Source: Lepidodermella squamata
Taxonomy: Eukaryota; Animalia; Gastrotricha
Direction: 5' to 3'
DNA length: 64,000 nt
Assembly: GCA_047495785.1 (NCBI GenBank)
Contig: JBLDXI010000029.1
Location: 3,348,001-3,412,000 of the forward strand
Below the pieces are notes generated by a model, which did not search any database, was not told where the DNA came from, and worked only from the letters and a program-made list of their open reading frames with translations. Below, one piece after another: positions 27,631-32,897 of the stretch. Every line of letters begins with the position of its first letter. Position 1 is the first letter of the stretch. Position numbers and translations under genes: made by a program.

Positions 27631-28993
27631 ATGGCGAATAAAAATCGACCAGTTGCACCGAAACCTAACTCTCAAGCACCCTCAGACGGTAAATTTGATT
27701 TGGCTGAAATCAGTGCGCGAAGTAACGGGTGAAATTGTACCTTAAGTCGCAGAGCCAAGGTTAAAGCCCCTGGAAAACAACAGAAGGGGGGTTGGTCATA
27801 ACATATCCCATTCGAGGATCCCGCACTTCGCGCACTGACTGAAAGTGATCAGGGTTTCAGACATTGAAGCCATAATATTTATGCTTCCAGAGGACATTCC
27901 GATAAAACTTCACGTGGCCGCAGCGAAAGGCGATTTGGCCACAATCCAAGAAATTCTATTCCGACCTGGTTTTACGGCCGAAATCCGGCAACAGCTAGTC
28001 GAACACCAGGACGCTGGTAACTTCAACCGAACCGCCTTGATACAAGCAGCTCGAAGCGGCCATCTTGCAGTAGTCGAATACCTAGCCCGTGAAATGAAGG
28101 CCGATTTGCTGGCACGGGACAGTCACGAACTCGGCTCAATGGCCATTCATTTCGCCGCTGAATTAGGTCGGTTGGAAATTGTGAAATTTCTCGTCGATTT
28201 CAAGCCGGACCTCGTCGAAGCCCGCGATCTCTTCGGCTCTACTGCTCTCAATCTAGCCGCATTTGCTGGGCAGTTGAAAGTTGTCGAATACCTTGTCGAC
28301 GAAAAATCTGCGAATATCGAAAATGCAGGGGCTTTCAATCGAACTCCTTTCCTTTCCGCTTGCGAGCAGGGCCATTTAGCTGTTGCTCAGTTTTTGATGA
28401 AAAAAGGCGCGAATCTAATGGCCAAGAGCAGTCTAGAGTCTAATGAAGATATGGCGATTCATTTAGCGGCATTTTTCGGCCATCTGAAGGTTATCGAGGC
28501 TTTACTTGAGGCGAAGCCAGATTTCTTGGAGCTGAAGAACAAAACTAACGAAACTGCACTAAATCGAGCCGCGATGGGTAATCAAATCAAGGTTTGAGCT
28601 TTGAATTTGAACTTTTTCCGATACCAAATGAACTCGTACTTTCAGGTTGTTGAATATCTGATAGATGTGAAGCACGCAAATATCGAAAATCAGGGCGAAT
28701 TCGGCAGAACACCTTTGTTGCAGGCTGCTGATGAGGGACATCTCGATTGCGTTAAATTTTTAGTGGAACGAGGCGCAAATCTAGCTGCTCGAGATAGCCA
28801 AAATGGCGACTCAGCCCTGCATCTAGCGGCCTATTTCGATCACGTAAAAATCGCAGCTTATCTCCTCTCGCTGAATGCTGGGGGTTTAACTGAATTAACA
28901 AACAAACAGAACCTCACTCCACTTGGTCTAGCTAAAAGGCAAAATAATCAAGAAATAATTGCCCTTTTCATGGCTAAAGGGATTAAACATTGA
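27631..28993 (+). CDS. Ankyrin-repeat protein, 3 exons
   Basis: Exons 27631-27688, 27891-28591, 28646-28993; about 10 ANK repeats (TALIQAARSGH, TPFLSACEQGH, TPLLQAADEGH, SALHLAAYFDH). Confidence 0.9.
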
Positions 28994-29203
28994 AAACGTC
29001 CCGGTTATCAGTTTTCTGATCCTCTTTCAAATGATAGCTGGTTTATCATTTGCTTTCCCCGGTTTTTTCAACCCGGTCCTCGAAACAACCTTTCTTCTAA
29101 AATCAATAATTTGATTATAAAAATATTTAAAAATGAATAAAATCATTTACCGCGGTGTAGCATCTTAGGTTTTTATTGAGATAATTTCATCATTCATCAT
29201 TCA

Positions 29204-30187
29204 TCAAAAAATCATTGGGCTGAAAATGTAATTGATTGGAAAGTGTGTGTATTCGTCGAATGGGCGCTGGAATCGCGCAGGATTGTGCGTATTTACCTTG
29301 TTAAAATCCACTGCAATTCCACTATGGCGGCCATTTTTCATAATCAAAACCGAACCCGGGCGAATTTTATCCGCTGAGCATTGGCCACTGCTAAGCGTGC
29401 GTTGCCGGTTAACGTCGGAGCTAAATTGAGTCTCGTTAGCCTCAATGAACGGAGTACAGGTGTATTTCTGCCACCGATTCGGTTGATGCTCCAGGAATTC
29501 TTTCAACCCCAACATGCCAGCTTTCCGGCTTGCAAAGCCGATGTTGAAGTAGTAGCCGTCTAATTCGTAATTGACTAATTCGCTGATTTTCGATTTGTAG
29601 GGATGAATGTTTGGCAGAAGGCCGGCAGCTGCGAGCGAGCGAGATACGAATTCGGCGCATTGGAAGTTCATTTGGGCGCACTCTTCCTCGCCTCGGTAGG
29701 CGCAAAATCGGGGCACGGTCCGCTTACAACGTAAATCGTGGCATTTCCAGTTTTTATTCGCGAAAGAGAAGTCTGGAAGAAAGAAAAGGGGAAAATTCTG
29801 GATGTGAGAAACAAATAAACATTGGAAATCAATGCATTTGGGCTAAAATCGATTTTAGCGACAATTCAGCTGGTGACTTACGACAAATGAGCTAAATTTG
29901 ATATAAGCTCATTTTTTCAAGGGTCAGAGTTAGGATTAGGGCTGAACGTTGCATTAAATTTTCTCTTATATTGTTTGCTTACGTCGTTTTAGAAGCTCAG
30001 CACTTGGTCCAAAAACGAAATTCGCGACAAAACTGCAGTTGTAGTTGTCATCTGGGCACGACATGGGGATTCCCTCGCTGCTTACCAGTGAATATTGATC
30101 CAAAGGTTGAGGTATCGTGTTACATTGAACGTAAGCCAAATACAACAACTTTATCAAAAATAGAGTTTCAAAAACTTTTACGGGCAT
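29204..30187 (-). CDS. Secreted NlpC/P60-like putative amidase (Amidase_6-like), 2 exons
   Basis: Exons 30187-29983 and 29772-29204 join in phase 1. Signal peptide; FANKNWKC..QCAEFVSRSLAAAG (catalytic Cys); GSVLI..RHSGIAV..VNTHN..R (His motifs). Confidence 0.7.
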
Positions 30188-30593
30188 TTCAAACTGTAAT
30201 TATATCATTCCAAGAGAAAAAACTGATGAGTTTTTTTCACTGGTCAGCAAAATGCAATAATGAACTTGACGCATCGTTGATTTAATTGTAGTACATTTCT
30301 AATTTTTCAAGCGGCCGGCGGGCGTTTTTTTCGCCCACTACCGGTGCTAAGCTAATTTTCAGCAAGACCAACGCTGGCCAACGCATTTTTTTCATGCAGT
30401 CTGCGGGAAATGCACTCAGCTGCGCGAAAAAAGCCCAGATTTTTAAGACAGACTTTTACAATTTCGATCGGGTATCCAGGGGCTAGAGCTGTCTAGCCCT
30501 AACGAAGATTCACAATAAAATCACGTTCTCAAGTTTAAAATTAGATCTTCCTGCGTCAGAGTGAACCCACGGGCAGTTGCTGAATGCTGAAGG

Positions 30594-32897
30594 ATGAATA
30601 TTTCTGAACATTTCCGAAAGATGCTGTCAGCTGCACTTATAACAGCCACCTTGCTATCCGGAGTTTCAAGCTCTGAGAAACCTAGGAAACTCTCGATATA
30701 CAGCTCCTTCCCGATAAGTGGAGCTGAACCATCGACATCGCAATGCTGCATTGCCGCGACTCAATACGTCATTGACAATGTCAACAATCGCAGCGATATT
30801 CTGCCTGATTACAATCTGGAATTATCAATTTTCGACGAATCTGCCTTCGCAGTATTTGCCCCAGGCCATATCATGAGATTCATTGAAGGCAGAAACAGAG
30901 ACTCAACGCCTTCGCCAGTTCTTATTGGCCCGCAATTTGTTTGCAATTCGATTTCCATGGCAACGAGAAATGAAGGCTATACTCATTTTTCAACGGGATG
31001 TAATGGCCCGAAGATAGTTATGAACCGAAATCTCTACGACAATATCTACAGCGTTTACGGGAGCTCAATGGAGCAAATTTTAGGATGGGCTTTATTCGCG
31101 CGGGATGTCGGGAAGTGGCGTCGGGTCGGGATGCTACAATCTGCGGCTAATGTTAACGACTACCTCTTCGGTATGCGACTGTACCATATGTTCTTGGAGA
31201 TGGGGGTAGATGTCGCTTATTGGGACATGGCCCCAACTTATACCGATGCCTTCATGTTAGCGGCTAGTAAAGGCCGGGCTCGAATTCTGTACGGCGGGTC
31301 ATCCAACATCGCAGTATGCATGGCTTATCTGTGCTTGGCCCATAAATACGGAATGAGACCACCTCAATATGTGTTTGTCATGGCGGCACCGTGTAGCGTA
31401 GACCCTGCTTTGATCAAAACTTGCCCTTACGATATTTTGGTATCGCAATTACGCGCGGCCTTCTTTGTCGGTTCTTTTTCCTCGGAATCATTTGCCAATC
31501 AGGAAACCTTGACCACATTAGGTTACCCAGCTTCAAAGTTCGATTCTGATATCCTGAAGCTTTTAAATAACAAACTATGCGCTGATTGGGACTATCGACG
31601 ACTCTGCCATGACGTAGCACTTCTCTCGATTATAGCCCTAGATAATTCGGAAAAAACACTTCGTTCCAGCTATAATATGACCCTTGCCGATTTCCCAAAT
31701 AATAGAAAGTTCATTGGGAAAATTGTCAATGAAAGCGTGGCGAAAATTAATGTAATAGGAACCTTCCAAGGTCGTTTGAGGTACGATAGCAATCAGGACC
31801 TTAGAGATGCAGCTCTTTTTGTTAGCCAAAGATGGAGTTCCTCGCCACCCAAGATTTTCTATCGAATGGAACAAATTGGACCAGAAGTCGATGTGAAAAA
31901 CTACCGAATGGTTCCCCATCTTGCTAAGGAGAAGTTTGTTTGGCTTACAAAATACGGGAATCCACCTAAAGACTTGTCAGAGGTCGAAATTCGATCAAAC
32001 GGTGTTTCGCTAACGACTCTGATCCCAATTGTTACGATTGCTTCAATGTCAGAAATTTTTCTTGTGGTTACCTTTGTTTTCAATCTAAGGCAATGTCCCA
32101 AAAGGATACGGAGGCTGCGTCGAGATTTTTTTGACTTTTCGATTAATCTATTCTTGTTATTCGGGTGTTTTTTCCTGGTCTTGGAATCGATATTAATAAT
32201 GATCGGCTATTATGCATTTCTAAAGGTTTTTTGTCCTTGGCGGCATGTTTTGCCTATATTAGGCGTTTCCATTGTCAACAGTGTACTGAGCTTCACATTG
32301 ATCCAAATGAACACATTTGCGTTGAATTTAGCTTCATCACGACTATCGAGGAGGCTCACTAATTTCGGCTACCAGAGTGATAATCCAAGAGCCCGGTATG
32401 ATTCATACAAAATTGGACTTCAAATGGCTATTCATTTTCTAATTTCTTGTGTTATCGCCACAGCTTGGCCATTTTTTCACCCAGCAAAATCTGTACCAAT
32501 GATTTCAGAGGTTTTTTGGGACGAGTTTGGAGATACATATTACCAGACTACAGGTGAATTTTGCGAAGGTCCCTACCAGAATTACTGGACTGCTGCTGGG
32601 TTGATTTTTGGCATTCTCCCGCTCTTCATCGGCTGTTTCTACGCTTATGAATTGAGGAAAGTTGTTATGCCGGAAAAATATCGCCTACATTTCAAATTGG
32701 CTCGCTTGGCGGTTGTGAATGCTACTACGCTGAGTGTTGCGGCGATTTCTGTAGTCTATGCGACGTCGAATAGTGGTCAGAGCCTGCAGGTAGTGATTTT
32801 TGGAATAAGCTGCTTGGTTTATGGGACAGTAACGCCTGCAATAATTTTCTATCCAGTTTGGCTTTACTCCTTCAACCACAGGGCTATTTCACAGTAG
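30594..32897 (+). CDS. Class C GPCR, GABA-B-type architecture (Venus flytrap + 7TM), intronless; copy 1
   Basis: 767-aa ORF: signal peptide, VNNRSDILPDYNL, flytrap domain joined directly via PPKD to 7 hydrophobic helices; no Cys-rich domain; very short C-tail. Confidence 0.88.
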   Translation: MNISEHFRKMLSAALITATLLSGVSSSEKPRKLSIYSSFPISGAEPSTSQCCIAATQYVIDNVNNRSDILPDYNLELSIFDESAFAVFAPGHIMRFIEGRNRDSTPSPVLIGPQFVCNSISMATRNEGYTHFSTGCNGPKIVMNRNLYDNIYSVYGSSMEQILGWALFARDVGKWRRVGMLQSAANVNDYLFGMRLYHMFLEMGVDVAYWDMAPTYTDAFMLAASKGRARILYGGSSNIAVCMAYLCLAHKYGMRPPQYVFVMAAPCSVDPALIKTCPYDILVSQLRAAFFVGSFSSESFANQETLTTLGYPASKFDSDILKLLNNKLCADWDYRRLCHDVALLSIIALDNSEKTLRSSYNMTLADFPNNRKFIGKIVNESVAKINVIGTFQGRLRYDSNQDLRDAALFVSQRWSSSPPKIFYRMEQIGPEVDVKNYRMVPHLAKEKFVWLTKYGNPPKDLSEVEIRSNGVSLTTLIPIVTIASMSEIFLVVTFVFNLRQCPKRIRRLRRDFFDFSINLFLLFGCFFLVLESILIMIGYYAFLKVFCPWRHVLPILGVSIVNSVLSFTLIQMNTFALNLASSRLSRRLTNFGYQSDNPRARYDSYKIGLQMAIHFLISCVIATAWPFFHPAKSVPMISEVFWDEFGDTYYQTTGEFCEGPYQNYWTAAGLIFGILPLFIGCFYAYELRKVVMPEKYRLHFKLARLAVVNATTLSVAAISVVYATSNSGQSLQVVIFGISCLVYGTVTPAIIFYPVWLYSFNHRAISQ

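Follow-up and report, generated by a model that had tools for sequence, protein, structure and literature searches.

The window that we analyzed, a stretch of 64,000 nucleotides, carries on its minus strand (positions 30187-29204) a two-exon gene that is a real, spliced, and selectively maintained gene of its animal host. Our preferred reading, which we consider fairly probable, is that this gene encodes a secreted papain-fold cysteine hydrolase of ~257 residues that is related to Amidase_6 enzymes, cuts peptidoglycan, and represents the most diverged, intron-bearing member of its family. We infer peptidoglycan hydrolysis because the relatives of the protein in fold are wall hydrolases, because its homologues include fusions to wall modules, and because the protein is likely to be secreted.

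Gene structure, splicing, and host status

The two-exon structure was read from the minus strand. Exon 1 (29983..30187; 205 nt) begins with an ATG at 30187 and contains 68 codons plus one base that starts a split codon. A spliceosomal intron of 210 nt (29773..29982) follows, with GT..AG ends and in phase 1, and is supported by a junction in the public run X2 and by the intron of an orthologue. Exon 2 (29204..29772) supplies the two bases that finish the split codon and 188 residues in frame from 29770, encodes the whole catalytic domain, and ends with a TGA stop codon (29206-29204). An AATAAA polyadenylation signal (29172..29177, minus strand) can be read 27 nt past the stop codon. For all further analyses, exon 1 (29984-30187, minus strand) and exon 2 (29207-29770, minus strand) were searched, folded, and placed in trees separately.

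Both motifs by which the gene had originally been recognized were present as written on the minus strand: QCAEFVSRSLAAAG, which corresponds to residues 37-50 of the exon-2 translation, and HSGIAVDFNKVNTHNPAR, which contains His149 and the His162-Asn163 pair. The codons of the proposed nucleophile Cys38 and the proposed general base His149 are located at 29657..29659 and 29324..29326, respectively, and those of His162-Asn163, an AHN/THN motif that may provide a third polar residue or oxyanion partner, at 29282..29287 (all minus strand). An additional intron close to the 3' end (GTAAAT at ~29296 to CAG at ~29221) was considered and rejected because the orthologue keeps the protein sequence across this stretch, and an alternative donor at ~30087 was dropped because the observed junction uses 29983.

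Residues 1-22 of the protein (30122..30187, minus strand), a hydrophobic stretch ending in ..AYVQC, form a putative signal peptide. The preliminary description had assigned a signal peptide outright. We find that the N terminus does resemble one, but E7 and K13 lie inside the hydrophobic core, and the best 12-residue Kyte-Doolittle mean is 2.15 in the window protein versus 2.55 in the more hydrophobic orthologue. After these 22 residues, exon 1 encodes a Cys-containing extension of ~46 residues that ends in Lys-Arg and that may be a propeptide. No further copy of exon 1 was found in the genome except that of a twin gene described below.

Evidence for splicing came from X2, a public run from 2015 that is presumed to be RNA. 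One X2 contig joins 29772 to 29983 and skips exactly 210 nt, with CT..AC ends on the plus strand; the short side of this joint is 26 letters at a depth of ~4, and we regard the junction as supportive rather than strong by itself. X2 depth was 5-30 over exon 2 and 0 both within the intron and upstream of 30088, with coverage of exon 1 confined to its 3' part. The DNA run X1 covered the exons, the intron, and the flanks evenly. Three joints between opposite strands were also observed in low-depth X2 contigs of exon 2 (29183/29301, 29362/29458, and 29654/29770), and these are probably assembly artefacts where two allelic variants meet.

The last exon of an ankyrin-repeat gene (28601-28993 on the plus strand and 29019-29149) converges on the amidase gene, with the 3' ends of the two genes ~30-50 nt apart; the X2 contigs begin at 29183 for the amidase gene and stop at 29149 for the ankyrin gene. 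On the other side, an unbroken open reading frame of 767 codons (30594-32897, plus strand) runs on the strand opposite to the amidase gene and begins ~400 nt upstream of it. Its product combines a signal peptide with a multi-pass membrane region and appeared class-C-receptor-like by eye; a word-indexed homologue search with this 767-residue sequence returned no match. Directly upstream of the amidase ATG (30188-30215, minus strand), the sequence reads ..TATAAT TACAG|TTTGAA ATG, in which TACAG could serve as a trans-splice acceptor, given that rotifers are known to use spliced leaders.

These observations bear on whether the locus could be bacterial contamination or a mis-assembly, an explanation to which we assign practically no probability and in favor of which no evidence was found. 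The intron is spliceosomal with a confirmed junction, the gene is flanked by the ankyrin-repeat and class-C-receptor-like genes in a window (3348001-3412000) that starts at base 3,348,001 of the multi-megabase contig C29, a second diverged copy has the same neighbors, and the X1 DNA run holds both variants at similar depth. Contamination is thus excluded by the intron, the neighbors, and the two copies. The same junction, animal-type neighbors, and pair of diverged copies bear out the original proposal of a host gene with a spliceosomal intron.

Family assignment, predicted fold, and proposed activity

Sequence comparisons placed the exon-2 product close to Amidase_6. Against the Pfam Amidase_6 model (PF12671), exon 2 scored 12.3 bits (E 0.18) over residues 32-74 only, which misses the gathering cut-off of 23.2. 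The Pfam model found no match across the whole genome, a search of NCBIfam with exon 2 found none, and the window protein had no sequence-level match to PF00877 or PF05257. With an eight-member family profile, 164 proteins were retrieved at E <= 0.001 and 102 at <= 1e-10 among 1.84 billion representatives. A 70-row profile, from which the window protein and its orthologue were excluded to avoid circularity, scored exon 2 at 106.8 bits (E 9.6e-26 in the 1.84-billion-protein space) over nearly its full length, well past anything expected by chance, and a profile of 29 bacterial rows alone scored it at 82.8 bits (E 2.2e-18). Four sequences in the latter profile (P0079, P0040, P0063, and P0099) themselves pass Amidase_6 with 27.6-30.8 bits over positions 3-157/163, and one bacterial relative that passes is named 'amidase domain-containing protein [Streptomyces vinaceus]' by NCBI. 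Judged by its sequence, the window protein is therefore a diverged relative of Amidase_6 and not a member by the Pfam threshold: the Amidase_6-type identity first claimed for it is upheld by the bacterial profile and by the predicted fold, but not by the score that Pfam demands.

Among 73 relatives, Pfam matches were to Amidase_6 in 12 (best E 2.2e-8), CHAP in 5, and NLPC_P60 in 2, and relatives were found fused to PG_binding_1, PG_binding_3, LysM, SH3_3, and SLT_3 modules. No wall-binding module is present in the window protein itself, which has an unusual amino-acid make-up and carries two insertions, one of 8 residues with a Cys and one of 26 residues flanked by cysteines. A word-indexed homologue search with the 73-row alignment yielded only 3 proteins, with low-complexity linkers probably swamping the signal. 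Across 72 aligned domains from bacteria, eukaryotes, and the source genome, C38, H149, H162, N163, and A165 were invariant; the Cys and His that had been described as intact are thus retained in all of these sequences.

Modeling of exon 2 with AlphaFold2 and the 73-row alignment gave a pLDDT of 87.7 and a pTM of 0.87 (pLDDT of 76.6 with an eight-row alignment). In the model, C38 opens a helix (38-48) and H149 is the first residue of a strand (149-155), which is the arrangement of the papain fold, and H162 is placed 13 residues after H149, a spacing typical for the third residue of NlpC/P60 enzymes. When the model was compared with 48,161 PDB chains by VIA-align, the top 28 matches were all NlpC/P60, CHAP, Tae3, or Tse1 wall hydrolases, with Z values of 9.5-7.1 and rmsd of 2.4-3.7 A over 97-119 residues; the first model behaved similarly. 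These matches included Trichomonas NlpC_A1 (6BIM; Z 9.5, rmsd 2.5 A over 102 residues), 8ER5 (Z 9.3), and 8TW1 (Z 8.9), followed by CwlO, LytE, SagA, Tae3 (Z 8.4), MepS, and Tse1 (Z 8.0). Since the Z values are only modestly over the background of 7-8 stated for VIA-align, the weight of the structural evidence comes from the uniformity of the list and from the sequence evidence rather than from the values themselves. A papain-like fold, the absence of which would have spoken against the initial assignment, is thus what the model predicts.

Other comparisons agreed with this placement to differing degrees. The nearest shape in the ESM Atlas was an Amidase_6 cluster (TM 0.56 over 133 residues), and Amidase_6 clusters made up 26 of 30 language-model neighbors (score 0.92). 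Foldseek gave no significant match to the PDB with either model (best E 0.09), and its weak list consisted mostly of papain-like peptidases. Searches of PDB sequences with 8-row and 72-row profiles returned rows at chance level only, indicating that no close relative in sequence has a solved structure. Together, these data support that exon 2 encodes an Amidase_6-like member of the NlpC/P60-CHAP papain-fold superfamily.

From the fold and its solved relatives, a mechanism can be proposed. Cys38, at the N terminus of its helix, would attack an amide bond in the peptidoglycan stem peptide; His149, on the neighboring strand, would activate Cys38; and the invariant His162-Asn163 pair would orient the histidine or stabilize the oxyanion. 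Amidase_6 has been listed among the families that need no third catalytic residue (PMC10318531). The short pro-segment that exon 1 may add would be removed at a conserved dibasic site (KR in the window protein and RR in the orthologue), and the enzyme would be released extracellularly, where it would kill bacteria or digest them. In a micro-invertebrate that feeds on bacteria, breakdown of the walls of its prey is as plausible a role as immune defense. As a point of reference, the Bacillus subtilis Amidase_6 proteins YhbB and YjcM are given as uncharacterised (PMC10653849).

The two insertions and the unusual amino-acid make-up make a changed substrate possible, and it may be that the protein is a papain-fold enzyme acting away from peptidoglycan, cutting or modifying another amide or ester in a protein, lipid, or thiol conjugate. 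LRAT-like proteins and glutathionylspermidine (Gsp) amidase are relatives of the fold that act in this way, and the structural matches did extend, at Z 5.5-6.6, to Gsp amidase, the amidase of trypanothione synthetase, C39 peptidases, and deamidases; in addition, the window gene has the longest branch of its family, insertions of its own, extra cysteines, and a new 5' exon. We nonetheless consider such a shift unlikely, given that wall hydrolases alone occupy the top 28 structural matches, that the invariant residues are retained, and that selection has kept the whole exon-2 protein sequence unchanged between the twin genes. Less likely still is a noncatalytic binding protein, with the fold kept without turnover in a sensor or lectin for fragments of the bacterial wall. 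Animals have repeatedly converted wall hydrolases into recognition proteins, with PGRPs as the established case, but pseudo-enzymes usually drop at least one catalytic residue, and here the Cys, the His, and the His-Asn pair are all kept and invariant. A peptidoglycan hydrolase remains our preferred reading.

Copies, relatives, and origin of the gene

A twin of 29204-30187 was found at C46:194007-194995 in the genome assembly (121 Mb, 151 contigs), with the same ankyrin and receptor neighbors. Over the 188 codons of exon 2, the twins differ by 31 synonymous and 0 replacement changes, such that the proteins encoded by this exon are 100% identical. Exon 1 differs by three substitutions, one of which is a replacement in the signal peptide (F6V), and the intron by 13 substitutions and an 8-nt indel. 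Over a 3.5-kb alignment, the copies vary between 0 and 21 substitutions per 100 nt, with intergenic stretches adjacent to the amidase gene among the least diverged; the divergence of exon 2 falls within this range, and we therefore ruled out that it is exceptional. The 31 silent changes against none that alter the protein are strong evidence of purifying selection, and in our preferred reading such selection now acts strongly on the family.

The orthologue (P0001) is 58% identical to the window protein and was found in four ENA metagenome assemblies, on four contigs of which three are 16-20 kb long; its neighbors there are Fibrinogen_C, Sushi, and PGAP2IP genes. Its locus has an intron of ~47 nt at the same codon position and in the same phase as that of the window gene, preceded by a short first exon that encodes a strongly hydrophobic N terminus and ends in Arg-Arg in place of the Lys-Arg of the window gene. 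The existence of this orthologue in another animal implies that the sublineage of the window gene is old.

A lone acquisition is not supported, as the window gene is one of ~11 family loci in the genome: four on C18, three on C19 (one with stops), and one each on C34, C54, C29, and C46. The other family members are single-exon genes with signal peptides of their own. These intronless paralogues resemble the window gene in family, invariant residues, and inferred role, but they are only 30-33% identical to it (38-39% over partial matches), and none of them has the intron, the separate first exon, the dibasic junction, or the very long branch of the window gene. Four of the paralogues form a tandem cluster at C18:25380-37592 (L066 and L069-L071) and two more at C19:2798676-2800697 (L067 and L068). 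These tandem genes are intronless, encode signal-peptide-bearing proteins of ~215-220 residues, and have a Cys-rich insertion that is absent from the window gene. A further copy at C19:2750294-2750929 (L074) is broken by one TGA and one TAA, with its match spread over two frames, and is either a pseudogene or another intron-bearing member.

Relatives in GTDB, which are 23-27% identical across the full domain, were almost all from Ktedonobacteria/Chloroflexota and Streptomycetaceae. All named bacterial sequences formed one group, with support of 100/99, in trees of 147 and 74 domains. A second group contained all other paralogues of the source genome and no GTDB sequence, with the paralogues nested among eukaryotic sequences from Klebsormidium, Phalansterium, and a copine-linked protist contig. 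We regard this second group as eukaryotic because of the identities of three of its members: P0112 comes from Klebsormidium nitens (GAQ81688.1), P0018 from a transcript of Phalansterium solitarium, and the gene of P0005 starts 131 nt past the end of a copine gene on AT-rich contigs. Signal peptides and linkers rich in Ser/Thr/Asn are found in many members of the eukaryotic group, and TSP1 repeats in one. The contig that carries P0005 (L076:2-1986; JGI 3300030741, plus six contigs from six other samples) encodes a copine with C2 and Copine domains followed by the 177-residue P0005, and is evidence for the presence of the family in a soil eukaryote with a compact genome.

The window gene, its twin, and P0001 form a clade that has a deviant composition and a branch length of 1.57 changes per site. 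The careful tree joins this clade to P0057 and P0099, which look bacterial (Ala-rich, with a lipoprotein-type start and SLT_3 and B_lectin modules), on the bacterial side of a branch with 96/94 support. Taken at face value, this position would mean that the window gene was taken directly from bacteria in a transfer event of its own and gained its intron and secretion signal later, and the GC3 of exon 2 (0.56, versus 0.39-0.44 in neighboring genes) also points in this direction. However, the long branch and deviant composition make long-branch attraction likely, and one clade uniting all copies of the source animal and its relative was not rejected by an AU test (p 0.188). Moreover, the nearest rows to exon 2 by path length and identity are mostly eukaryotic (33-37% identity versus 20-30% for most bacteria), and neither P0057 nor P0099 has a recorded taxon. 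That the window gene came from bacteria separately is thus a weak possibility.

For the family as a whole, no named animal was present among 30 relatives that were looked up, in which the named eukaryotes were an alga and an amoebozoan; most relatives are unnamed metagenome proteins, and sequences close to the source genome may be missing from the records. The lack of any named animal in this set makes a foreign origin of the family in the lineage of the source animal somewhat the likelier history, and for the paralogues a eukaryotic donor looks more likely than a bacterial one. The horizontal transfer proposed at the outset is therefore retained as a probable foreign origin, with a direct bacterial donor a weak possibility: trees with bacterial and protist homologues place the paralogues in the eukaryotic group and leave the window clade on its long branch. 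More speculatively, and in our estimation improbably, the window gene and its orthologue could represent a second independent bacterial acquisition on top of a protist-type set, or a duplicate rebuilt into a zymogen with a changed substrate range. In the zymogen variant, the signal peptide would come from the new first exon, as would a pro-segment with cleavage at the conserved dibasic site.

Relation to known wall hydrolases and significance

Amidase_6 (PF12671) gave the best single Pfam match and the best Atlas shape match to the window protein and shares with it the domain layout and the motifs C-A/N-x-F-V...AGG, H-x-x-I/V-G-V, and A-H-N/T. In contrast to Amidase_6, the subgroup of the window gene has an extra N-terminal W-x-C...C motif, further cysteines, a eukaryotic-type putative signal peptide, and an intron. 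The NlpC/P60 and CHAP hydrolases (6BIM, CwlO 8WT3, LytE 8I2E, and the phage endolysin Lys2972 8TW1) share the fold of the window protein over a core of ~100 residues (Z 8.4-9.5, rmsd 2.4-2.8 A) and follow the Cys...His...polar order as well, but identity to the window protein in structural alignments is 12-19%, and its Cys-rich N-terminal segment and two insertions differ. Secreted wall hydrolases of this kind that eukaryotes acquired laterally have a precedent in the NlpC/P60 enzymes of Trichomonas vaginalis (PMC6299479).

Likeness to the dae genes had also been suggested. The dae genes encode domesticated amidase effectors in ticks and other eukaryotes and derive from bacterial type VI Tae toxins. 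The shared idea is that of a bacterial-type papain-fold wall amidase kept as a secreted eukaryotic gene, and as a functional analogy this parallel stands. No tie to the Tae-derived dae genes was found: Tae3 (4HZ9), with its Z of 8.4, matches the model no better than ordinary NlpC/P60 enzymes do, and it and Tse1 come lower in the list than such enzymes, no Tae chain appeared in the PDB sequence searches, and the nearest relatives of the window gene are eukaryotic secreted proteins and proteins of Ktedonobacteria and Streptomycetaceae rather than type VI effectors. On sequence grounds, we do not class the window gene as a dae gene. A link between Amidase_6 and Tae3 has been drawn in the literature (PMC10318531). 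No paper on eukaryotic Amidase_6 proteins or on rotifer genes of the NlpC/P60 type came up in our literature searches.

Animals that live in association with bacteria have repeatedly borrowed microbial enzymes that cut cell walls, with tick dae2 and the NlpC/P60 enzymes of mites as examples. With its function inferred, the value of the window gene is incremental: it would extend this list to the Amidase_6 branch of the fold. The analysis also indicates that a eukaryotic clade related to Amidase_6 exists in protists, an alga, and the source animal and is missed by current Pfam thresholds. Intact, expressed, and tightly conserved, the window gene offers a practical starting point for finding what Amidase_6-type enzymes cut.
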